Assembly (NCBI GenBank): GCA_028023455.1
Contig: JAQFVV010000005.1
Coordinates: 18,910,001 to 18,974,000 of the forward strand
DNA length: 64,000 bases
From: Epiperipatus broadwayi
Taxonomy: Eukaryota > Animalia > Onychophora
Direction of reading: 5' to 3'
Shown here: positions 1,919 to 58,334 of the stretch, in pieces
Position numbering within the stretch: the first letter of the stretch is position 1
Layout of the letters: each line of letters begins with the position of its first letter
Position numbers and translations under genes: made by a program
Notes under the pieces: generated by a model
What the model saw: the letters and a program-made list of their open reading frames with translations, nothing else
Told to the model about the DNA's origin: nothing
Databases searched by the model: none

Positions 1919-4900
1919 TTACTATTACTTTCAAGCTATAAACTAAAATAGTACACAAAGGGGTAAAAAGTGCCTGCTGGATGCTGCATTTGTTTCAGTT
2001 TTGAATCCAATTTTTACTGATGAAATCAAAAGCTGAAAACCAATCTGAGAATATTATAGCATCATATAGGGCATCTGGTATTCAACAATTCTTCAAATTT
2101 AAAGAGAACTGCTTTTGCAAAAATAGCTGATATTTTAAACATGAAATCTGTACACATGCTTACATTTAAAACTGCCATTGAATATTTTTTCTTCTTATTT
2201 TTTTACTAATCAGATAAAATAAAATGTAGTGATATAAGGTTATGCTGTTAAATAAAAAAAGAAAAGAAAATCAGTGTCATTAAACATTGTTTGTTAATAT
2301 TTTTTAATGTAAAATAATAATGACAATATGGGAAAAAATTATAATACTATCGACTTGCATTCCATATAGACATAAACTGAATATAAACGTGCATAATAAT
2401 CTATAGAAAAGTGTTTCTTTCATTACTACTACATTATAAATTCAATGTACAAGTATATCATACAAAACAAAGTTCACAATTGTTTTAATCTCTAAGTATT
2501 AAATGATATGGGAAAATCTCTTATAGTAACAGTATATAAAAAAAAATTAGCAGAATGTTTTCAAGACTAAAAGCAGATAAGATGTGATATGTTATCACAT
2601 CTTATAATATACCATCATTACAAACCTTCAGACAAATAAATAGAAGCAGATAAAATCCATAAAATGTTAATTGACTATTATTTGGCTTCTTTCTTCAATA
2701 ACTTTTATTCCCAAATAAATCTGGTGTAATAATAAGACAGAATTTTTTTTTTTACTAAATAAAAAAAATTAATATAAATAAAAACAGATTCTTTTTCTAT
2801 GTGTTGTCTAAATATAAACAACCATTTTCTTTTTGTCAGAAATCTGTAGAAATAAAGTGATAATCATTCAGGGTGAAATTTTAAACTCAAACCAGATCTA
2901 ATCAAAATATTATTAATTTCAGCTTATAAGTAATAAACACAGATAAGAACCATTATATCTCATTTAATAACCATATGATTGATCAAAACAAGTCAATTAA
3001 TTGTAAATATTTAATAAACTTTGCACATAATGTATGTACATATATATAATGTAAACAGAAACAGACTTCTGTATCCTATCATTAAAAAAGTAAATATCAT
3101 TTCAGAAAATCTACAAAAATAAAGCAGCTATATAATAACCCTTACTGCTCCAAGAATAATAAAGTTTAATTTTCTATTTCCATTTAGTTTGATATATACA
3201 TTTAATAATGTATTTATTAAATATTTATAATTAACTGACTTGCATCGATTGATCATAAGGTAATTAAAATGAAATACAAGGGTGGCTCTTACTTGCATCA
3301 TTGTTATCTATGAGTTCAAATTAATAACAATATTTTTATAACTAGTTTGAGTATGAATTTCACTCTGAATTTCATCATAAGTCAAAAAATTAAGTCTTGT
3401 TAGTTTGGAGCAATAAGAATAAATGGCTGCTTTATTCTTACAGATTATTTGATAAAGTGTGTGTTTATATTTATATCATTAGCATATAAAAAAGATCTGC
3501 TTCCATTTATATTACATATATATATTTAATGACGCGTTTATTAAATATTTAAACTTAAATTTAGTATACTTTAGTAACTTTGAAAAAATTATATATCTAT
3601 TTATAAATATTCCAATATTGCAATTTTTTGTCAACGTTACTTTTGTTTCCTGAATTCCTATAAAAGTAAAATGACAACAAACTATAGACTTAATGAATAT
3701 AACAAAAACAAAATTTTAAAAGAAATATATATTTTAAAACCCAAAAGTATAAAATTATGATTAACAAAGCATAATGCATATGCTGCTTTTACTTACAAAT
3801 TTTATATACATGCTATTCAACAATGTAAGGAGATCTAAAATAAAAACACATCAAAGAATATATTTTTAACAAAATACTCCTCTTATATTCACTGTCAATT
3901 AGATCTAAGTTTTGTGTGAATTCTTGGAACCATGGACAATGATGAACTCTGTATAATGTACACAATTAACATATATACATATATTTGATTCAGTTTAATT
4001 TTAAAATTATGATAGTCAACAAAAATAGAATAATGTAATTATAAAAAATACAGAAGACCAATAAATTCAGTGATTACATTCATATATGTAATGATTTGTT
4101 CTTATTGAACATCTGGTCGATTTCATCATAATTTTTTATCCTTTCACTGTTAAATTAATTTGTTTCATTTTATCAAGTTAAAAAAAAAGCTTCTCTTATG
4201 CTTGATAGAATTGCTATCATCATTAGTTTTGCATTTTGAAGACCACTTCAAATAAAATTTTATTCAATAATTCATAGCGATACTTAGCAACCATAAGAAT
4301 GATTGCTATGCAGGGAGAGTAAGATGAAAAAATAATTGACTAAAAAATAATTCACAATTTTGCTTACATAAGTTGAAATCCATCAAAATTTATAACTTTC
4401 TAGTTTATTTTTCTTCAACATGAATGTTATTGAAACCATAAATTATGAGCTTTAAATGTAGAAAATAAAAAATACAGACCACAAAATTTATTATTTCAGC
4501 AAAGAAATTCTGACAGATGAAAGTATATACAGTTATGTACTTAATTATTTTAATGTTTCAAAAAAAAAAACCTATCCTAAGAAAAAAGAATCCCATCAAT
4601 TGAATTCTCCTTCATGGATGTCCTCTAATTTAATACCAGAGAACGAATTCTCAAAATAATTTGGTTTGTAATAAAATGGATTCTTGCAAATTTTGGTTTT
4701 GATAAATGCTCAATTTTCTACTTTTGTTTATTGCAAATAAGATTTTAACTAAAATTTATTCATTTTGTTCTTTATAGATTTGCAGGAATTCTTTTCTATG
4801 TGATGACATTTTGGTAATATTTTTGATCCAAATATTGTTTAAAATCATAATATTAACTTCTTCCTCTTAACAATTCCATATTTCAAGCATACTAATAGTA

Positions 4901-18039: not shown

Positions 18040-18121
18040 TGTTCGAACTTTGTGGGTAGATTTAAAAATAGTCGGTAATAAAGTTTTTTTTTTCTTCAAG
18101 TTGAGAAAAAGGAAAAAAAAA

Positions 18122-21100
18122 ATGTCGATAGGGCTAGCTAGCATCGCAGAATTCGACATAGGTAGTCTGCATGAATGGCCGTATTATGTAATGCAGTTGC
18201 AAAATTTTTTCAAATTGAATTTAATTTGTGAAAATGAAAAGAAAGTAGCCGCATTTTTCTGTCTATCAGGGAGAAAGGTTATTGAAATAGCAAATAAACT
18301 TTTTCAGGGACAAATAACAGATCTAATTAGTTACGACGAGTTAGTTAATAAGTTAACAGAATATTTCAGCCCTAAGCCATCATTATATGTAGCCAGATTA
18401 AACCTTCGGAAACGAAAACAGGAAAGAAACGAATCCATTAAAGAGTATGATATCGCTCTACATCAACTAGCTAAAAATTGCGATTATGGCAATTTTGTAG
18501 ACCAGATCTTAATAGATCAACTACTTTGGGGAATTTGTGATGAGAGATTAAGACAGTCTTTATTGTCAGAAGTAAAATTAATGTACGATAGTGCAATCCA
18601 AAAAGGGATTGTATACGAATCCGTAATAGACCAAGTAAGAAAATTTTCTAAAAAAGAAGAAACTAGTAGAATAGAGATTTATAAAATTAACAAATATGAA
18701 AAAAAAGATTTTAAAACTGATAATAAGTTTCTAGTTGAATGTTTTGCTTGCGGTAAAAAAGGCCATTTGGCAAAAGAATGTAGATTTAGAAAGGAACAAT
18801 GCTATAATTGCAGTGGGAAGGGCCACATAGCAAATGTATATAAAAAAACGCAGAGAAAAATGAGTAGTAGAAAAGATTTTAAAATTAAGAAAAATAGTAT
18901 TAAAAATAATAATGGAAAGAATAACCAAGATCAGTTGTTTTTGCAAATTTTAATGTTTCAGAAGAAAATTAAAATGGAAATAGATAGTGGGTCCGGGATT
19001 TCGTTAATTTCTAAAAAGTTGTGGAATAAAATAGTTATAGATAATCCCGGGATAGAATTACAAAAAGTATCATTAAAAATTAAAGACGTAAATGGAAATC
19101 CCATTAAAATAGTAGGGAAAGTTAATGCAAAAATAACTCATAGCAAAAGGAATTACGAACTTCCAGTATATGTAGTACAAAAAGATATTACTCCGTTAAT
19201 AGGTCGTGATTGGTTTGATAAGTTGGGGATAAAATTTTCAATAGTTAAAAAGATTTCAGTCGAGAATGAAATGTTAGAAAAATACCCAAAATTATTCACA
19301 GAGGAATTGGGGTTGATGGATACAAAACCGATTGAATTAAATCTAAGTGATAATGCAAAACCTTGTATTTGTAGACCCAGAAAAATACCATTCGCACAAC
19401 GTAAAATGGCTGAGGAAAAAATTAATAAGTTAGTGGAAACGGGGGTTTTGTCACCTATAGAAGAGTCGGAATGGGCTACACCAGTGGTAATATTAAACAA
19501 ACCAGACGGTAGAATTAGAATATGCGGAGATTATAGAACAATGGTGAATAAGTATTTAAAGAAGGGTTCATATCCCATTCCCAATATTAGAAAAATATTA
19601 AGTAGCTTATCGAGTGCAAAATATTTTGCAAAGTTAGATTTGAATGCAGCCTATCACCAAATTAGAGTTACTGAAAATACAGCTCGTGTATTAACGTTGA
19701 CAACTCAGTTTGGGCTTTTTAAATGTAACCGTTTACCATTCGGAATAACATCGGCTCCGAATATTTTCCAAGCAAAATTAAACGGTATATTAAATGGTAT
19801 TGAAAGTGTGCACCCATATTACGATGACATTTTAATTGCAGAATCAATGGCTGGTAGGTTAGCTGAAAAAATTAAAGTTGTCTGTAAAAAGCTATGTAAT
19901 GCAGGGGTTAAACTTAACTTGAAAAAATGTGTATGGGAAACGCAAGAAATAAAGTTTCTTGGGCATTTAATTACTAACAGAGGTAAAAAACCTTTACCTG
20001 AAAAAATAAGTGCAGTTAAAAATATAGACTCACCTAAGAGTGTTAAACAGCTGCAAGCTTTTTTAGGACTCATAAATTTTTTTGAACCTTTTTTAAAAAA
20101 TAAAGCCATGATAGCAGCACCACTGTACAAGTTGTTGAGGAAAGGTCAAAAGTGGACATGGAACGAAAGGCACGAACAAGCATTTAAGGCAGTTAAACAA
20201 TTATTAACATCAGATTCTTTTTTAGTGCATTTTGATCTAAATAAAGAAGTAGTATTAACAACCGATGGATCTCATTTCGGAATAGGAGCAGTATTAGCTC
20301 ATAAAACTAATGGTTTAGAGAGACCCATAGCATACGCATCAAGAACGTTGTCAAATGCTGAACGTAATTATAGCCAGCTAGATAAAGAAGTGCTAGCAAT
20401 AATGTGGGCCATTAAAAAATTTCACCAATATATTTATGGAAGAGATTTTACAATAATAACGGATCACAAGCCATTAATAAGCATTATAGGGAAAGATTGC
20501 CCAATACCGGAACATTTAAGCCCGAGAATGATCAGATGGGTAAATATATTAAATAGTTATGATTTCAGTTTGGAATTCAGAAAAGGCAAATGTATAGCAT
20601 ATGCAGATGCTCTATCCAGAGTACCGGAAAATAACAAGGAGAGTGAAATAGAAGTTGAAGTGAACTTCATAGATACTTTAAATTCTAAAATGATAAATAG
20701 TAAAAACATTAAGGATTGGACTGAAAAGGAAGAAAGTTATAGAATATTATGTAAGTGGATTAAACATGGATGGCCAGAAAAGAAACCCGGAACAGTTATC
20801 AACCGCATTCTGGATGAACAGAGACAAACTATCAATCTGTAAAGGGTGTATAGTGATGGGAGATCGAATAGTGGTCCCTCCTGAAGGTAGATGGAGAGTC
20901 TTGAAAATAATTCACCAAGGACACCCAGGGATAGTGAGAGCAAAGGCTCTAGCCAGAAGTTATGTGTGGTGGCCAAAAATTAATGTGGATATTGAGAACT
21001 TTATAAATAAATGAGAGATATGCCAAGCAGAAAGGACTTTACCAGTAAAACAATATGTGTCGGCGGCCAAAGCCATCGAATCCGTGGCAACGTATACATA

Positions 21101-21991
21101 TTGACCATTTTGGACCTATAGAGGGAAAAACATATTTTATATTAATAGATGCAACTTCTAGATGGATAGAATGCCATCAAGCAAAATCTACAAGTAGTGA
21201 GGAAACAATAAAAATACTAAAGGAAATATTTTTAACACACGGTTTCCCGGAGGCGATTGTATCAGATAATGGACCAAGTTTTGTGAGTAATGAATTTAAA
21301 CAGGGCATGGACTCATGGAATATAAATCATATATTGACACCGCCGTATCACCCCGAGTCGAATGGGTTAGCCGCGAGAGCAGTGCGTCAAGCAAAGCAAT
21401 TTATTAAAAAGAGTACTAGTAGGGATACACAGAAGATTGTAAAAGAATTCATGTGGCATCAAAACATTACACCGTCAACAACGACAAGAAAATCTGCTGC
21501 GGAAATATTATTTGGAAGAAAAATAAGAACTGGACTTGATTTCTTAAAACCAAAGAAATTCGAACAATGGGAACCAGAAGAAACAATAGAAAAATTTGGT
21601 ATTGGAGACAACGTAATGTGCAGACATGTTAAGGAAAAAATGGATAAATGGTAGGATAGAAAAAAAATTGTCAAAGCAAATTTACATAATTAAAGGTGAA
21701 GATAACCAAATCTATAGACGTCATAAAAATCATATTAGAAGACGGTATGAAAGTGAACAAAATACGTACGATGGGCAACAACAAATAGAGATAGCAGACG
21801 AACCTAAAGATATAAAACAGAATGAGAGAAATACGAATATTAAAGCACACGAGGAAATCGTTATAGAAGAGACAACGGAAATCGATAACAGTTTTCCTCA
21901 AGAGGAAAAAAAATCACCGAGACCAGTGCGTTTTAAAAGAAAACCAGCGAATTTGGAAGATTTTGTAACATCGGAAAAACAAAACTTCTAA
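18122..21991 (+). pseudogene. gag-pol polyprotein: open through gag, PR, RT and RH; integrase broken by frameshifts (~20788, ~21063, ~21640) and a TGA at 21012-21014
   Basis: CCHC knuckle CFACGKKGHLAKEC; protease IDSG; RT RICGDYR, LPFG, YYDD; RNase H TTDGS, DHKPL; IN HQGHPG..C..C, RIHIDH, IVSDNG, SNGLA. Confidence 0.92.
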
Positions 21992-29844: not shown

Positions 29845-31544
29845 ATAGTTAAGATTTTATTTGAAAGAATCACACAATTCTTAAGTTAATAAAACAAAAA
29901 CATAATCATCTATGGTTTGGATGAATTTTAAAAAAGTGATTATATTTGTAGTTTCATTGGTCATGGTAGCCTAACTTCTGTAAAAGAGATGTATATTAGA
30001 ATACTCAGGAATTTCTTATGAAAATATTAAAAGATTGAGAAAACACATTTCCCAGATGATAGTTGTCATACTTGTTGAGAGACATAAGGAAGTTAAACTC
30101 TTGAGAACTTTTTAATTGTTGTTTTGTTTTAAAGAAATAAATCTATAATACTTTTTGATGATAAGAATAATGTATAAAAGGACCTATATAGTCTTTCTCA
30201 CTGAAAAAATGCTAACTTCTGGGAAAATTGCCACAGTATCAGATAAAATTTTGACTACTGATAAGGTTCTTTGATAATGAATTATATATATATATATATT
30301 AAACTATGAATTATCTGAGTATTACCTTGACAACAGATTGCTGACATTCTATTGGTTAATTTTAAATACTGAATGTAATGATATTATTTATACATATATA
30401 TAATTGATTTCTGCATAAGCTGGGCTTTCAAGAAGAATCAAGACTGATTGACTAGAGTTTGAAGTTTTATATTATCAAATGTTCATAAGAAAATCTTACT
30501 GCGTGGCAATTAGATTAGATAACTGTCTTCTCATGTAGTGCAAGAATGTGCATGCAACAACTTTGCAATGTTTATTAATAAGACACTGAATAGATAATCT
30601 TTTCATCCAAAAATCATTATAAATTTCATTATTCTCAATAATTTATGAATTACCACTATTAATACTATCATCAATATTCCATGCAATAAATTGTACTTTC
30701 TCGAAAACTTAGAACAGGAAGCCTCAATATTTTCTGAGAAAAAGATGACATCAAAAATTTTGTAATAAATAGCAGATCAGAAAAGTCGAATTTGAAAAAA
30801 AAAATCTATTTTGAATAATACTAGATTATATACAATTTGTAGTAATTCTTTATAAAAAATAAATGAAACAATTCACATGAGAGATATTTATTTTCATTAC
30901 TAACAAGATAGTTCTTTTTTTTAAAAAAAAAAATCTTATTTAAAAACAACAACAATATAGCATCACACAAAACAAATTGTTTTGAATTGCTGTTATTAAT
31001 ATTTAATATTAGTATTTTAAAAAATTTCATAAATGCACTAAATCATGTGTAATTGAATTTTAATTTGATATGTTTGATTAGATTAAATTTGTTTACATAG
31101 TTATAAACTAGCAAAAGAGTTGATGTTAGTTTTGGAAATTCTCATTTTACAATGTAAAGTAATATTTAAATTTTAGAAATAAAAAAAATAAATAAAACAA
31201 GAGCATCTCTTTATTCTACTGCCATCTACAGTGAGCTTGAGTAATCAGTGATTATTCAATAGTATTGCATTTCAATTCCCCTCTCCAGATCAATTTTGGC
31301 TTGCTGAAGCTTGTTATTAATAAAAAATTACACTGATAACTGATATGCTTATTAAACCGTATTTAATTGTATATGAGCTATTTCAAAATATATAATAATA
31401 TTGTGAGATGTGATATGTTGGACTATTTCCATCATTTATGAGTGAATGTTGAATGTAAAGAAAATTTTAAATCTTATTTAAACTTTCCAAATACAAACAA
31501 CTTGTTAGTAATAACACACAAATAAACACTACAGGTTAGTAATT

Positions 31545-31589
31545 ACACAACGTTTCGAGTAGTATTATTCTCCTCTCGTCTTCAGGTGT
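31545..31589 (-). ncRNA. Minimal PLE-type hammerhead ribozyme
   Basis: On the - strand: ACAC-CTGAAGA-C-GAG...CTC-GAAA-CG-TT-GTGT. 4 bp stem I and palindromic AACGTT stem III. Confidence 0.65.
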
Positions 31590-31609
31590 TGCTGGCCTAT
31601 ATGCACAGT

Positions 31610-31700
31610 GACAATATTCACTTAGAAGTTGAACTCGCACCTTTAGATTCTTGAATACTGAATTTTAAGGCAAACGCTGTACCAACTGAGCTATTCTGTC
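31610..31700 (-). other. tRNA-derived (SINE-head-like) sequence, not a functional tRNA
   Basis: A-box TAGCTCAGTTGG; B-box-like GAGTTCAACT; GACAGAA/TATTGTC acceptor-like pairing; anticodon and T arms disrupted. Confidence 0.6.
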
Positions 31701-32647
31701 AAAGGCATCATATAGTAGAAATAAGGACTCAGGTGGATTTGAACTGACCCTCATATATAAATATATAAATGATGGAAATAGTCCAACATATCACATCTTA
31801 TAATATACCAACCATCATTACAAACCTTCAGACAAATATAATATTGTAATTTCAATATAGATTTTGTGTATATGTGTACAAATATAGTCTCATAAAAGAA
31901 ATGAATATCAACAGAACTGATAAAATCTGTAAAATCAGATATAGGCCATAGCAATATTAACGAAAACATTTCTGCCTTTCATTTCCATCTCTATCTATCT
32001 ATCTAAAGTAAACCATCTAAGCTATCTAACAATCTACATTCTTTCAATTTACACCTTTCTTCTTCAAAATATTCCCACAAATAGTGTCTTTTATTTTAAT
32101 TTTATAGCTCTAAAAAAAAACTACTATTCAATTAAAACAGGCAAAAAATTCAATTACAATTTTAAATAATATAAAATGTCTTTTTAAATGAAGTCAGAAA
32201 TTCTTGTGCACAATCTACATGTCCAGAAACTTTAATTGTTAAGATAAACATTTCCTCCCTTAAAACTTTTATATAACTCTTTAGTACTCAATTATTTTTC
32301 CATCCCTGATTCATCTGATTTTTAATCCCTATATTGCTTTCATAAAAGCTTTATTGTTAGTCCAACTACCCTATCCTCTTATTATTCAATTTCATTACAA
32401 AAAATTTAATAAAAAAGAAACAAGTCAAAAATCTTCACCTGTCTTTTTTTTTTTAACTTTAAATATGCCCTATTCTCCATACTCTTTTGACACACTATAC
32501 TCCAAAAATAAGTATTAAAATACTTTTTCATTTCCATAAAAACTATATCAATAATCAAAATCCTTAATCTATTTTTGCCTTCTTTTCTGTTGTTCTGCAT
32601 CAAATAATAAACTACCTTCTATGTTATCATATTTATTCCTATATAAC

Positions 32648-50925: not shown

Positions 50926-51180
50926 TATGATCAATGGTGGATCCAAGTATTATTTGGTAGTTGGTGGCTTCTCCTTTTTCTTAGCCAGCTATAATGACAG
51001 TAAGATATGGAATGAAGCATGAATAAGAACAAGAATCAAGAAGAATCATTTCAAAAAAAAATATCTTGGTTATATATATATAAATAACTACAACCATTAA
51101 ATGTCTGTATTTTTAAATTATATAATAATAATTCAAACAAATATATTTAACACAGTATTCAAAATTAAATAATCTATTCT

Positions 51181-51231
51181 TTACCAGAAGTACTTTCAAT
51201 TGTTTCACTGACAATCTTTATCAACTGTTAA
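51181..51231 (-). ncRNA. Same variant hammerhead, 3' pLTR of the - array
   Basis: Reverse complement of 54881-54931. Confidence 0.7.
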
Positions 51232-51280
51232 TACAAACGTACAAAAAATAAAAACTTGCATTACCCATCATTCAATCTAT

Positions 51281-53644
51281 TCAAATTTCCCACAATTCTG
51301 TTGTCTTTATATTAGCCGATTGTTTATTCATCAAACCACCTCTATTCCTAGATATCATCATTGCCTCTTTAATTTTACGTTTTTCACTACACCTTTCAAT
51401 TTGAATAATTTTTATATCTCTATTATTAAATTTAAAACCATAATTACATGTTTTATTATGATCAAATATAATTGATGGAGTATTCATATTTACTGAAGAT
51501 ATATTTTCTTTCTGTACACGTTTATATAATGTCTTATGATCATTATATCGTTTTTGTAATGTACATTTGGATTCCCCTATATATTTTATTCCACAACCAC
51601 ATTCCAACATATATATAACAGAACTTAATTCAAACTTAGAAATCTTGGCTTTGGAGTTATTTATCATATCATTTATATTATTTGAAGAGAAAAAAGAAAT
51701 TCTACACAAACCACTAAAAAGTTTATAAATTAATTTAGCTTGTTGATTAGATATAAAAGGAATAGAAATCCATTTATCACTTTTTAATTTACTTAATATT
51801 TTCTTATTATTACTCTTATTTTGATTATATTTTGTAATTGTATTATAAATAATATTCCTTCCATAACCAACATTCAACATATCAGTAATATATACATTAA
51901 TATTTTCAATTTTATCACTAATAAATTTGCACAAATAATCATTTCTAAATAAAAATGACTTCAAACCAGCTAATTTATGACTCATATGAACTTTAGAATT
52001 ATATGGAATATAACCCCTAATTTCCACAGGCTTTAAAATCATATTATAATCAAACACATTATTATTTCTTTTAATAAATATATCTAAAAACTTTATAGAA
52101 TCTTCCTTCTCTTCATTTAACACCCATTTTACATTATTAATCATATTTAACTCATTAAACAAATTAACTATTATTTCATTATGTGCACATATAAATACAT
52201 CATCAACATATCTACAATATACTTTAATTCCTTTATATTTTATCTGAGACAATATCTTAACCTCATAATTAGAAATAAAAAAATTACAAAGCTGTGATAC
52301 CACCGGAAGACCCATTGGCCAACCAAAATTCATTTTATAAAAGCAATCATTAAACCTAACATATATATTATCATTCACAAATCTTAATATTTTAACAATA
52401 AAATTCCTAATATTATTATCTATAGATTTTAAAAACAAAGCTCTTTCAATAATCTCTATTGATTCAATACGATTAATTGAACCATACATTTCAGATATGT
52501 CAAGTGTACACATAACATCATTATTATCAATTTTTATATTTTTAATCCTATTAATAAAATCAAATGATGATGAAATCGTATAATCTCCAAATCCAAGCAC
52601 ATCTTGCATTATTTTTTCAATATATCTACAAGCATTATAATAAAAAACACCACCAAAATCAACAATTACTCTTAATGGATAACAATTTTTATGCAATTTT
52701 ATATTTGCAAAGATTCTTGGAAACACTGCAGACGACGGATATAAACTGTAATATGTCTTTGCATCAATAACTTTTTTCTTTTTAGCAGTCATTAAAATGT
52801 CATTAATAAATTTCATTCTATATGTATCAATATTATTTAATTCACTTTTTTCAAAACAAAGCTTCTTCATTTGATCCATAATTTTCATATTATATTCATC
52901 CTGTTTCATTAGGCACATCCGTAAACCCTTGTCCTCCTTCAAACAAATTAATTTATTACTTTTTAAAAAATTTTTAAATTCATAAATTTGTTTTAACCAA
53001 ACATTATCATTTTGCTTATCAAATGTTTTATTTTTTATTTCATTAATTATTTTATTCCTATCATTTAAATCACAATTTATAACACCAAACGAATATTCAA
53101 TCGCAGCATTTAATTCAATACTAGAATCTTTCCAACCTCCACCGACGTATTTAGATCCAAAATTTAAAATATAACGCTGATTAAAATTCAAATCAACTCC
53201 AGAGATATTCACATAGTTTTGATCACTAAAATTTCTTGGAAACTTTTTATTATACAAATGTTCAATTTTCCTATTAAATTTATCCATCATTTTTGAATGC
53301 AAATTATTAAAACGTATTTGACAAATCTGTTTATATTCATATAAATAATCAATATTATTAACGTAAATAAAATGATTTAATGTTCTTAAATACTTTCTAT
53401 TATAAAACAGCAAATACTTACATTGGTCAATTATATTACGAAGTATTATATTTTTTAGATCATCCATAGATCTCACACTCAATTTACATAACTTATTTAT
53501 TTTAATACAACAACAGTTAGGAAACACTTTAAAAATCCGACAGGAATACAAAAACTTTATTCTGCACTTTAACGTAATAACTTTAACCGTTACTTTCCGC
53601 CATTCCTTTAAAAGCCAAATTCCATTTAATTGCTTTAAATCCAT
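51281..53644 (-). CDS. PLE reverse transcriptase + C-terminal GIY-YIG endonuclease, 787 aa
   Basis: KEDKG, IKLHK..PLRVIV, LDISEMY, GWPMGLP, RYVDD, IKFLDI, VIYMLECGCGIKYIGES, RYNDH, RKIKEAMMI. Confidence 0.93.
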   Translation of the reverse strand: MDLKQLNGIWLLKEWRKVTVKVITLKCRIKFLYSCRIFKVFPNCCCIKINKLCKLSVRSMDDLKNIILRNIIDQCKYLLFYNRKYLRTLNHFIYVNNIDYLYEYKQICQIRFNNLHSKMMDKFNRKIEHLYNKKFPRNFSDQNYVNISGVDLNFNQRYILNFGSKYVGGGWKDSSIELNAAIEYSFGVINCDLNDRNKIINEIKNKTFDKQNDNVWLKQIYEFKNFLKSNKLICLKEDKGLRMCLMKQDEYNMKIMDQMKKLCFEKSELNNIDTYRMKFINDILMTAKKKKVIDAKTYYSLYPSSAVFPRIFANIKLHKNCYPLRVIVDFGGVFYYNACRYIEKIMQDVLGFGDYTISSSFDFINRIKNIKIDNNDVMCTLDISEMYGSINRIESIEIIERALFLKSIDNNIRNFIVKILRFVNDNIYVRFNDCFYKMNFGWPMGLPVVSQLCNFFISNYEVKILSQIKYKGIKVYCRYVDDVFICAHNEIIVNLFNELNMINNVKWVLNEEKEDSIKFLDIFIKRNNNVFDYNMILKPVEIRGYIPYNSKVHMSHKLAGLKSFLFRNDYLCKFISDKIENINVYITDMLNVGYGRNIIYNTITKYNQNKSNNKKILSKLKSDKWISIPFISNQQAKLIYKLFSGLCRISFFSSNNINDMINNSKAKISKFELSSVIYMLECGCGIKYIGESKCTLQKRYNDHKTLYKRVQKENISSVNMNTPSIIFDHNKTCNYGFKFNNRDIKIIQIERCSEKRKIKEAMMISRNRGGLMNKQSANIKTTELWEI

Positions 53645-54115
53645 TTCATATATAAATAACTACAACCATTAAATGTCTGTATTTTTAAATTATATAATAA
53701 TAATTCAAACAAATATATTTAACACAGTATTCAAAATTAAATAATATATTCTTTACCAGAAGTACTTTCAATTGTTTCACTGACAATCTTTATCAACTGT
53801 TAATACAAACGTACAAAAAATAAAAACTTGCATTACCCATCATTCAATCTATTCAAATTTCCCACAATTCTGTTGTCTTTATATTAGCCGATTGTTTATT
53901 CATCAAACCACCTCTATTCCTAGATATCATCATTGCCTCTTTAATTTTACGTTTTTCACTACACCTTTCAATTTGAATAATTTTTATATCTCTATTATTA
54001 AATTTAAAACCATAATTACATGTTTTATTATGATCAAATATAATTGATGAGTATTCATATTTACTGAAGATATATTTTCTTTCTTACACTTTATATAATT
54101 CTTATGATCATTATA
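53645..54115 (-). repeat. 5' pseudo-LTR of the - array (shorter ORF 3' end plus UTR)
   Basis: Copy of ~51073-51545 at offset 2572. Confidence 0.9.
53753..53803 (-). ncRNA. Same variant hammerhead, 5' pLTR of the - array
   Basis: Reverse complement of 54881-54931. Confidence 0.7.
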
Positions 54116-54116
54116 T

Positions 54117-55039
54117 AATCTAAAGTTCATATGAGTCATAAATTAGCGGTGAAGCATTTTTATTTAGAAATGATTATTTGTGCAAATTTATTAGTGATAA
54201 AATTGAAAATATTAATGTATATATTACTGATATGTTGAATGTTGGTTATGGAAGGAATATTATTTATAATACAATTACAAAATATAATCAAAATAAGAGT
54301 AATAATAAGAAAATATTAAGTAAATTAAAAAGTGATAAATGGATTTCTATTCCTTTTATATCTAATCAACAAGCTAAATTAATTTATAAACTTTTTAGTG
54401 GTTTGTGTAGAATTTCTTTTTTCTCTTCAAATAATATAAATGATATGATAAATAACTCCAAAGCCAAGATTTCTAAGTTTGAATTAAGTTCTGTTATATA
54501 TATGTTGGAATGTGGTTGTGGAATAAAATATATAGGGGAATCCAAATGTACATTACAAAAACGATATAATGATCATAAGACATTATATAAACGTGTACAG
54601 AAAGAAAATATATCTTCAGTAAATATGAATACTCCATCAATTATATTTGATCATAATAAAACATGTAATTATGGTTTTAAATTTAATAATAGAGATATAA
54701 AAATTATTCAAATTGAAAGGTGTAGTGAAAAACGTAAAATTAAAGAGGCAATGATGATATCTAGGAATAGAGGTGGTTTGATGAATAAACAATCGGCTAA
54801 TATAAAGACAACAGAATTGTGGGAAATTTGAATAGATTGAATGATGGGTAATGCAAGTTTTTATTTTTTGTACGTTTGTATTAACAGTTGATAAAGATTG
54901 TCAGTGAAACAATTGAAAGTACTTCTGGTAAAGAATATATTATTTAATTTTGAATACTGTGTTAAATATATTTGTTTGAATTATTATTATATAATTTAAA
55001 AATACAGACATTTAATGGTTGTAGTTATTTATATATGAA
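54117..55039 (+). repeat. 5' pseudo-LTR of the + array (duplicated ORF 3' end plus UTR)
   Basis: Copy of ~56690-57570; contains the 217-aa partial ORF 54178-54831. Confidence 0.9.
54881..54931 (+). ncRNA. Putative variant hammerhead ribozyme (U3-A8 core) in the PLE pLTR
   Basis: TTAACAG-TTGATAA-A-GATTGT-cagtgaa-ACAATT-GAAA-GTAC-TT-CTGGTAA. Stem I 6 of 7 pairs, stem II 6 bp, palindromic AAGTACTT stem III. Confidence 0.7.
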
Positions 55040-57403
55040 ATGGATTTAAAGCAATTAAATGGAATTTGGCTTTTAAAGGAATGGCGGAAAGTAACGGTTA
55101 AAGTTATTACGTTAAAGTGCAGAATAAAGTTTTTGTATTCCTGTCGGATTTTTAAAGTGTTTCCTAACTGTTGTTGTATTAAAATAAATAAGTTATGTAA
55201 ATTGAGTGTGAGATCTATGGATGATCTAAAAAATATAATACTTCGTAATATAATTGACCAATGTAAGTATTTGCTGTTTTATAATAGAAAGTATTTAAGA
55301 ACATTAAATCATTTTATTTACGTTAATAATATTGATTATTTATATGAATATAAACAGATTTGTCAAATACGTTTTAATAATTTGCATTCAAAAATGATGG
55401 ATAAATTTAATAGGAAAATTGAACATTTGTATAATAAAAAGTTTCCAAGAAATTTTAGTGATCAAAACTATGTGAATATCTCTGGAGTTGATTTGAATTT
55501 TAATCAGCGTTATATTTTAAATTTTGGATCTAAATACGTCGGTGGAGGTTGGAAAGATTCTAGTATTGAATTAAATGCTGCGATTGAATATTCGTTTGGT
55601 GTTATAAATTGTGATTTAAATGATAGGAATAAAATAATTAATGAAATAAAAAATAAAACATTTGATAAGCAAAATGATAATGTTTGGTTAAAACAAATTT
55701 ATGAATTTAAAAATTTTTTAAAAAGTAATAAATTAATTTGTTTGAAGGAGGACAAGGGTTTACGGATGTGCCTAATGAAACAGGATGAATATAATATGAA
55801 AATTATGGATCAAATGAAGAAGCTTTGTTTTGAAAAAAGTGAATTAAATAATATTGATACATATAGAATGAAATTTATTAATGACATTTTAATGACTGCT
55901 AAAAAGAAAAAAGTTATTGATGCAAAGACATATTACAGTTTATATCCGTCGTCTGCAGTGTTTCCAAGAATCTTTGCAAATATAAAATTGCATAAAAATT
56001 GTTATCCATTAAGAGTAATTGTTGATTTTGGTGGTGTTTTTTATTATAATGCTTGTAGATATATTGAAAAAATAATGCAAGATGTGCTTGGATTTGGAGA
56101 TTATACGATTTCATCATCATTTGATTTTATTAATAGGATTAAAAATATAAAAATTGATAATAATGATGTTATGTGTACACTTGACATATCTGAAATGTAT
56201 GGTTCAATTAATCGTATTGAATCAATAGAGATTATTGAAAGAGCTTTGTTTTTAAAATCTATAGATAATAATATTAGGAATTTTATTGTTAAAATATTAA
56301 GATTTGTGAATGATAATATATATGTTAGGTTTAATGATTGCTTTTATAAAATGAATTTTGGTTGGCCAATGGGTCTTCCGGTGGTATCACAGCTTTGTAA
56401 TTTTTTTATTTCTAATTATGAGGTTAAGATATTGTCTCAGATAAAATATAAAGGAATTAAAGTATATTGTAGATATGTTGATGATGTATTTATATGTGCA
56501 CATAATGAAATAATAGTTAATTTGTTTAATGAGTTAAATATGATTAATAATGTAAAATGGGTGTTAAATGAAGAGAAGGAAGATTCTATAAAGTTTTTAG
56601 ATATATTTATTAAAAGAAATAATAATGTGTTTGATTATAATATGATTTTAAAGCCTGTGGAAATTAGGGGTTATATTCCATATAATTCTAAAGTTCATAT
56701 GAGTCATAAATTAGCTGGTTTGAAGTCATTTTTATTTAGAAATGATTATTTGTGCAAATTTATTAGTGATAAAATTGAAAATATTAATGTATATATTACT
56801 GATATGTTGAATGTTGGTTATGGAAGGAATATTATTTATAATACAATTACAAAATATAATCAAAATAAGAGTAATAATAAGAAAATATTAAGTAAATTAA
56901 AAAGTGATAAATGGATTTCTATTCCTTTTATATCTAATCAACAAGCTAAATTAATTTATAAACTTTTTAGTGGTTTGTGTAGAATTTCTTTTTTCTCTTC
57001 AAATAATATAAATGATATGATAAATAACTCCAAAGCCAAGATTTCTAAGTTTGAATTAAGTTCTGTTATATATATGTTGGAATGTGGTTGTGGAATAAAA
57101 TATATAGGGGAATCCAAATGTACATTACAAAAACGATATAATGATCATAAGACATTATATAAACGTGTACAGAAAGAAAATATATCTTCAGTAAATATGA
57201 ATACTCCATCAATTATATTTGATCATAATAAAACATGTAATTATGGTTTTAAATTTAATAATAGAGATATAAAAATTATTCAAATTGAAAGGTGTAGTGA
57301 AAAACGTAAAATTAAAGAGGCAATGATGATATCTAGGAATAGAGGTGGTTTGATGAATAAACAATCGGCTAATATAAAGACAACAGAATTGTGGGAAATT
57401 TGA
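55040..57403 (+). CDS. PLE reverse transcriptase + GIY-YIG endonuclease, 787 aa (identical protein to 51281-53644)
   Basis: Same motifs; identical translation in the ORF track. Confidence 0.93.
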   Translation: MDLKQLNGIWLLKEWRKVTVKVITLKCRIKFLYSCRIFKVFPNCCCIKINKLCKLSVRSMDDLKNIILRNIIDQCKYLLFYNRKYLRTLNHFIYVNNIDYLYEYKQICQIRFNNLHSKMMDKFNRKIEHLYNKKFPRNFSDQNYVNISGVDLNFNQRYILNFGSKYVGGGWKDSSIELNAAIEYSFGVINCDLNDRNKIINEIKNKTFDKQNDNVWLKQIYEFKNFLKSNKLICLKEDKGLRMCLMKQDEYNMKIMDQMKKLCFEKSELNNIDTYRMKFINDILMTAKKKKVIDAKTYYSLYPSSAVFPRIFANIKLHKNCYPLRVIVDFGGVFYYNACRYIEKIMQDVLGFGDYTISSSFDFINRIKNIKIDNNDVMCTLDISEMYGSINRIESIEIIERALFLKSIDNNIRNFIVKILRFVNDNIYVRFNDCFYKMNFGWPMGLPVVSQLCNFFISNYEVKILSQIKYKGIKVYCRYVDDVFICAHNEIIVNLFNELNMINNVKWVLNEEKEDSIKFLDIFIKRNNNVFDYNMILKPVEIRGYIPYNSKVHMSHKLAGLKSFLFRNDYLCKFISDKIENINVYITDMLNVGYGRNIIYNTITKYNQNKSNNKKILSKLKSDKWISIPFISNQQAKLIYKLFSGLCRISFFSSNNINDMINNSKAKISKFELSSVIYMLECGCGIKYIGESKCTLQKRYNDHKTLYKRVQKENISSVNMNTPSIIFDHNKTCNYGFKFNNRDIKIIQIERCSEKRKIKEAMMISRNRGGLMNKQSANIKTTELWEI

Positions 57404-57452
57404 ATAGATTGAATGATGGGTAATGCAAGTTTTTATTTTTTGTACGTTTGTA

Positions 57453-57503
57453 TTAACAGTTGATAAAGATTGTCAGTGAAACAATTGAAAGTACTTCTGG
57501 TAA
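57453..57503 (+). ncRNA. Same variant hammerhead, 3' pLTR of the + array
   Basis: Identical sequence to 54881-54931. Confidence 0.7.
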
Positions 57504-58334
57504 AGAATATATTATTTAATTTTGAATACTGTGTTAAATATATTTGTTTGAATTATTAATATATATATACTACTGACCTCTTGTTTTTCAATACCTTGAT
57601 GATCTCTTTATTTTACTTAACCTAGGTGACCTCAGTTTATTTTAATTACATTTAATTTTCAAAATACCATAATTATTTAACTGATTGAATTTTTATCTTG
57701 TTTTCAAATTTCTTAGCTCCAAACACAAAACCAGTCTGCTTTTTAATTATCCTATTTTTCATTCTTTTATTACATGAAAACCACTCTTTATATTGGATAA
57801 GTAGGTACTAGATAGGTGTTTTATGCACAAACCTTCCTGCACCCATTGATTACTCTGGCTTGCATGAGTGGTGCTATTTTATGAAGTTTTGCCTCTGTTT
57901 CTTTATTTTATTTACCAAATGTAATTTTTTTAAAATTAAACTTTTAATATCTATTTTCATTAATATTAGTGTAACTAATAGTTGTTTTTGTAATAAACAA
58001 CTTATAAGAACATGGATTAGAACATATTCTTTTAAATAGATTTTTCTAATTCTAAGTTTTAGTCTTTGATAAGAAAAACTGGCTATACTGTTTTAACCTA
58101 CTTTATTATATAGTTTCTTCTAAATTTAATCACTTATAATAAAGTCTATTTATTAAAATAATATTTTTAAATAATAATTCTTTATGAAATTTCAACTTTA
58201 CTTTATAATAAAACCTATTACATTATTTAAACTTATTTTAAAATATTACTTTTAATAAACCCTTATAAAATATCAACTTTATTTCCTAATTTTAAAAATT
58301 TATTCAAAGTTATTTTTATTATATATATATATAT

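Follow-up and report, generated by a model that had tools for sequence, protein, structure and literature searches.

The locus analysed here raises the question of whether the terminal repeat (pLTR) of a Penelope-like retrotransposon of Epiperipatus broadwayi contains a genuine hammerhead ribozyme motif whose core carries a U3-A8 pair in place of C3-G8, and whether such a motif could release a unit-length RNA. The DNA analysed is a contig stretch of 64,000 nt, hereafter called the window.

In the survey of Cervera and de la Peña (2014; PMC4209133) minimal hammerheads (min-hammerheads, or min-HHRs) were found in the repeats of every Penelope-like element surveyed there. The class was described as having a conserved extra nucleotide that separates position 9 from 10.1, a palindromic 15.2-16.2 and action as a dimer, and its G10.1-C11.1 pair was called highly conserved. 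The activity of the min-HHRs in vitro was low, and self-processing of the element RNA, possibly with circularisation, was proposed. U3-A8 covariation was reported in the same work for the Cercyon Penelope-like elements of Schistosoma mansoni. The dimer model of hammerhead cleavage is also summarised in a 2019 review.

The host Penelope-like element

The motif is carried by an element that consists of two inverted arms of approximately 1.2-1.3 units each, which are 100% identical over 2931 nt. Its main features are as follows:

54155-57565, plus strand: plus arm, ~1.33 tandem units of 2572 nt
51076-54116, minus strand: minus arm, a partial tandem of the 2572-nt unit, head-to-head with the plus arm
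55040-57403, plus strand: intact Penelope-type ORF of 787 aa (RT/GIY-YIG)
51281-53644, minus strand: identical 787-aa ORF of the opposite arm
54178-54831, plus strand: C-terminal part of the ORF (217 codons), contributed by the partial unit upstream, within the pLTR
54881-54931, plus strand: min-hammerhead motif in the upstream pLTR of the plus arm, predicted cut after 54924
57453-57503, plus strand: identical motif in the downstream pLTR of the plus arm, ORF stop 50 nt upstream, predicted cut after 57496
53753-53803, minus strand: identical motif in the upstream pLTR of the minus arm
51181-51231, minus strand: identical motif in the downstream pLTR of the minus arm

The 787-aa ORF is uninterrupted, and the description of the element as intact in an earlier note on this DNA holds. 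A phmmer search with the ORF against a library of 1.84 billion proteins revealed 8220 relatives, the best of them with 26-28% identity. RVT_1 was present in all eight of the top relatives that were scanned and GIY-YIG in two of these eight; an RT followed by GIY-YIG is also the architecture of the nearest atlas clusters. When the ORF was aligned with nine relatives, it was found to retain every family-invariant residue, including the RT residues (D382 and Y479-V-D-D482, the YVDD motif) and the GIY-YIG/CxC block (Y678, C682, C684, Y688, G690, R699, H703, E760 and N773). A Pfam scan of the same ORF revealed no domain, and the RVT_1 and GIY-YIG models both fail despite the presence of all catalytic residues. 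Domain scans alone would overlook the Penelope-like element of this window. The protein is strongly N/K/I-rich and AT-biased, deviates in composition and forms a very long branch in the protein tree.

Neither a word-based protein search with the ORF nor an exact query of public assemblies for it gave a match, and blastn of the 2572-nt unit against the window found no diverged copies of the element family. Since the arms are identical and the ORF is uninterrupted with its invariant residues retained, the element is young and was inserted recently. Judged by its sequence, it is an intact, very young Penelope-like element with the usual head-to-head partial-tandem footprint.

It should be mentioned that the window also contains a pol/gag region of an LTR retrotransposon at 18050-21991 (+), where a 930-aa ORF (gag, zinc knuckle, RVT_1, RNase H) is followed by an ORF with an integrase core. 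ARAGORN detected no intact tRNA in the window.

Anatomy of the motif and its chance level

The motif at 54881-54931 (+) has a length of 51 bases and can be divided into the following segments, all on the plus strand:

54881-54887/54925-54931: stem I, UUAACAG/CUGGUAA, 6 pairs (three, then an A.G mismatch, then three)
54888-54894: core UUGAUAA (U3 U4 G5 A6 U7 A8 A9)
54895: bulged A, unpaired, between A9 and 10.1
54896-54901/54909-54914: stem II, GAUUGU/ACAAUU, 6 bp, giving type I topology with stem I
54902-54908: loop CAGUGAA of 7 nt, closing stem II
54915-54918: GAAA (G12 A13 A14 A15.1)
54918-54923: palindrome AGUACU, which contains A15.1-U16.1 and pairs with a second copy as a 6-bp helix III, with no self-fold
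54924: U17, an H as expected at this position

The type I hammerhead layout claimed earlier for the four pLTR copies is confirmed by the sequence, with three further exact copies located besides the one described above. All four are in the window, where none would be expected by chance, and within each arm they are spaced by 2572 nt, exactly as had been stated for the tandem copies. In the sense orientation the hammerhead follows the ORF stop by 50 nt and precedes the next ORF start by 109 nt. The four copies amount to one independent sequence and are silent on conservation, because both the copies and the arms are 100% identical.

The conserved core nucleotides U4, G5, A6, A9, G12, A13, A14, A15.1-U16.1 and H17 (=U) are all canonical, and only positions 3 and 8 are swapped, forming a Watson-Crick U3-A8 pair that replaces C3-G8. 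The stems agree with the earlier description in part. Stem I is present, but with one A.G mismatch and therefore six pairs; the 6-bp stem II followed by GAAA was found as described, and it is closed by a G10.1.U11.1 wobble (54896/54914) rather than by the G10.1-C11.1 pair. This wobble is a tolerated variation and no disqualifier, since L006, a relative with a canonical core, has the same G10.1.U11.1. Stem III is indeed palindromic, but the 8-nt palindrome AAGUACUU proposed for it includes A14 and U17. As these two nucleotides must remain unpaired in an active core, the functional helix III comprises 6 bp.

We searched both strands of the window with a strict descriptor, namely the published min-hammerhead widened to U3-A8 (C3-G8 or U3-A8, a bulge of 0-1 nt, NUH, palindromic helix III, stem II of at least 4 bp and stem I of at least 3 bp). 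The four pLTR sites were the only matches, and the background was 0.01 matches per dinucleotide-shuffled window of 64 kb. An accidental resemblance within non-coding, AT-rich DNA, for which the low G+C content of the window (23-38%) could speak, is therefore hard to reconcile with the strict descriptor; moreover, the motif is located exactly at the usual hammerhead site of Penelope-like elements, and the relatives described below agree with this placement. On sequence grounds, the hammerhead motif at 54881-54931 is genuine: it is small, of the dimer type, and situated in the terminal repeat of an intact and young Penelope-like retrotransposon.

When any Watson-Crick 3-8 pair and a longer loop were allowed, one extra motif was detected in the window, at 31545-31589 (-). 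It has the canonical core CUGAAGA (ACAC CUGAAGA C GAG..CUC GAAA CGUU GUGU) and sits in an unrelated SINE-like element at 31398-31830 with flanking inverted repeats.

An Rfam scan of the window motif, both at the gathering threshold and at E<=10, revealed no hammerhead. Canonical searches thus do miss the motif, as the earlier note had predicted, but the core swap is not the cause: at E values up to 10, canonical C3-G8 min-HHRs were also left unmatched, both those in the relatives and the one in the SINE-like element, so the Rfam models miss the whole min-hammerhead class. Weak Rfam matches to the sR11 C/D-box RNA inside the ORF tail (E 0.49) were taken as chance.

The 3-8 pair in distant relatives

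To see how the 3-8 pair behaves outside the window, we turned to the contigs of nine distant protein relatives (L001-L009). A sense-strand min-hammerhead was present in six of them (L002, L004, L006, L007, L008 and L009), whose proteins share 20-24% amino-acid identity with the 787-aa ORF. The motifs were placed across the ORF stop, 68-285 nt behind the stop or 117-137 nt before the start. No sense-strand motif was found in L001, L003 and L005, whose contigs extend only 181, 67 and 135 nt, respectively, behind the ORF. A metagenome scan for the motif gave no match.

The cores carry C3-G8 in L006, L007, L008 and L009. In L004 (2715-2752, +) the core is UUGAUAA, with the same U3-A8 pair as in the window motif. 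In L002, a relative of the Penelope-like type taken from a metagenome assembly in ENA, the core is GUGAACA and the pair is G3-C8; this motif (2585-2627, +) overlaps the ORF stop and is well formed with its natural G3-C8. Every motif of the relatives combines a stem I of 3-4 bp with a palindromic helix III, and in each a single nucleotide is bulged behind A9. Together with the window motif, eight motifs were compared via the structural parse of the descriptor, which partly forces the stem pairing. The extra nucleotide between A9 and 10.1 is present in all eight. U17 occurs in five of the eight, and the predicted cleavage triplet CUU is consequently not atypical for this class, contrary to what had been suggested.

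For the relatives a looser descriptor was used that left positions 3 and 8 unconstrained. It gave nine matches in total, compared with 0.92 expected per shuffled set (both strands). Watson-Crick complementarity at 3-8 was found in 7/7 sense-strand motifs of the relatives, versus 22 of 92 (24%) matches in the shuffled sequences; the pair was C-G in five motifs from four loci, U-A in one and G-C in one. Only this 3-8 result counts as a test, because the stems came from a descriptor that requires pairing. For related Penelope-like elements, the covariance check proposed in the earlier note came out in its favour, and its reading of a type I, dimer-type hammerhead with a compensatory U3-A8 core in an intact element is supported by the anatomy, by the shuffle control, by the intact ORF and by homologous motifs at the equivalent place in distant relatives, among them the independent UUGAUAA of L004. 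The two antisense matches (in L003 and L004) agree with the chance expectation. Such chance-like hits could be cited in favour of a chance resemblance; with the shuffle controls and the positions of the relatives' motifs taken together, that explanation is effectively refuted for the window motif, and we regard it as extremely improbable.

In the protein tree L004 (U-A) is sister to L006 (C-G) with support 100/100, and the window ORF is on a long, unplaced branch. Since L004 groups with a C-G relative, the U3-A8 swap probably arose more than once, and the sisterhood of the two suggests a recent switch from C-G to U-A.

Three side observations may be added. The two U3-A8 motifs, 54881-54931 and L004:2707-2760, both have a stem I broken by one purine-purine mismatch (A.G and A.A, respectively) that is followed by three A-U pairs. 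The L006 motifs at 708-744 and 3280-3316 (+) are 2572 nt apart, which equals the unit length in the window and is probably a coincidence. The G3-C8 orientation of L002 is the pair that was engineered in the study of PAc, the Poseidon element of Anolis carolinensis (Mob DNA 2024; PMC11167929), where the single change C3G or G8C abolishes cleavage and the double change restores it partly.

Proposed dimer cleavage and the alternatives

We consider it likely that the window motif is a minimal dimer-type, type I hammerhead (min-HHR) of a Penelope-like element, belonging to a lineage with U3-A8 for C3-G8 and serving unit release through a double hammerhead. Its anatomy, its sense-strand position, the intact RT/GIY-YIG ORF and the equivalents in distant relatives are the observations from which we start; cleavage and its role we infer from the published model.

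According to this model, a transcript across both repeats would hold two motifs, 2572 nt apart. The AGUACU palindromes of the two copies would pair into a 6-bp helix III and the stems I would form in trans, giving a double hammerhead in which each site would be cut after U17 (at 54924 and 57496). The released unit RNA would be 2572 nt long (54925-57496), with the whole ORF inside and with 5'-OH and 2',3'-cyclic phosphate ends. In the core, the U-A pair would assume the structural role of C3-G8. Residue 8 of the hammerhead reportedly acts through its 2'-OH and not through its base, so that the U3-A8 swap should be tolerated. Cleavage would probably be slow, with help from host factors or from the protein that the element encodes.

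Similar arrangements are known. The window motif resembles that of S. mansoni Cercyon (PMC4209133) in its pLTR site, the U3-A8 pair, the unpaired nucleotide after A9, the palindromic 15.2-16.2 and the proposed action as a dimer, as well as in its short, ill-defined helix I and long helix II (6 bp in the window motif, 7-8 in Cercyon). It differs in that (i) the window element belongs to a different family in a much more AT-rich genome, (ii) the 10.1-11.1 pair is G.U instead of G-C, and (iii) a palindromic insert of 2 nt is present in helix III (AGUACU). PAc shares with it a hammerhead of a Penelope-like element within the pLTR, but the PAc motif has a C3-G8 core, overlaps the ORF start and was studied by experiment (PMC11167929). 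As in other dimer-acting hammerheads of Penelope-like elements, stem III is too short for stability as a monomer, and cleavage would occur as a dimer. An unstable helix III, a palindromic loop and a two-copy active form also characterise the double-hammerhead systems of the newt satellite and viroids (Forster et al. 1988, as cited in PMC4209133 and in the 2019 review). Those systems, which have canonical cores and contacts between loops, consist of short tandem satellites or of RNA replicons, whereas the copies in the window are 2.6 kb apart in a coding retroelement.

Structure prediction did not favour the hammerhead. For the monomer, ViennaRNA gave -3.1 kcal/mol for the hammerhead fold and -5.2 kcal/mol for the minimum-energy fold; for the double hammerhead the values were -7.4 and -18.0 kcal/mol. 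In all seven comparison motifs, including those with canonical cores, the hammerhead was not the minimum-energy fold either, and the ratio of double-hammerhead to minimum-energy values ranged from 0.09 to 0.79 across the motifs (0.41 for the window motif). These predictions are compatible with the weak, assisted activity described in the literature and do not set the U3-A8 motif apart.

The fold preference, together with the wobble at 10.1-11.1 and the A.G mismatch in stem I, counts against the interpretation preferred here. The same departures from the consensus, and the failure of the hammerhead to be the predicted minimum-energy fold, would fit its main rival, that the motif is hammerhead-derived but does not cleave, or is kept for something else than cleavage. 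It might then be a structured RNA in the repeat, for instance a site for binding or positioning the RT/EN protein, or it might simply persist through the youth of the element. In PAc cleavage requires the element's protein, target-primed insertion in vitro can dispense with cleavage, and RNA-seq revealed no ends at the cut site (PMC11167929). Insertion without cleavage and the missing ends both speak for such a non-cleaving motif, as does the weak in vitro activity of min-HHRs (PMC4209133). What this explanation accommodates poorly is that 3-8 complementarity is present in every sense-strand motif, including two independent non-C-G cases, and that the remaining core nucleotides are all intact; the retained complementarity is hard to explain without selection on the geometry of the catalytic core. 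We therefore judge a non-cleaving motif to be rather unlikely, and a dimer-type hammerhead that cleaves remains the better explanation.

The element family is present in sequencing runs of four organisms, some of them flagged as probable RNA, and the assembled contigs contain many diverged copies. In the probable-RNA runs the unit's last ~500 nt (54499-55036, repeat and ORF tail) have a contig depth exceeding that over the ORF body by a factor of 10-50, and loose contig ends occur at 54641 and 55015-55036 in several organisms (55036 in one run). This depth pattern hints at abundant solo repeats or at a short non-autonomous derivative with the 3' part of the element. Contig breaks at 54916/54919 were considered as RNA ends and rejected, because a DNA run shows the same breaks.

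Cervera and de la Peña (2014) already cover covariation to U3-A8 as well as the models of dimer action and of unit-length processing (PMC4209133), and with mechanism, dimer model and covariation published, the window motif raises no new question. It is a clean new example of the phenomenon described in 2014, with a full-length ORF and identical arms, and it extends the U3-A8 swap beyond the elements of Schistosoma. The small comparison made here (C-G, U-A, G-C) supports the view that 3-8 pairing, rather than the identity of the pair, is kept by selection. It can tentatively be suggested that a U3-A8 hammerhead with G.U at 10.1-11.1 may be in active use in this young and apparently autonomous element, and that Penelope-like lineages may switch repeatedly between C-G, U-A and G-C at positions 3 and 8. 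If this is true, Penelope-like elements would constitute a natural mutational series for the hammerhead core.
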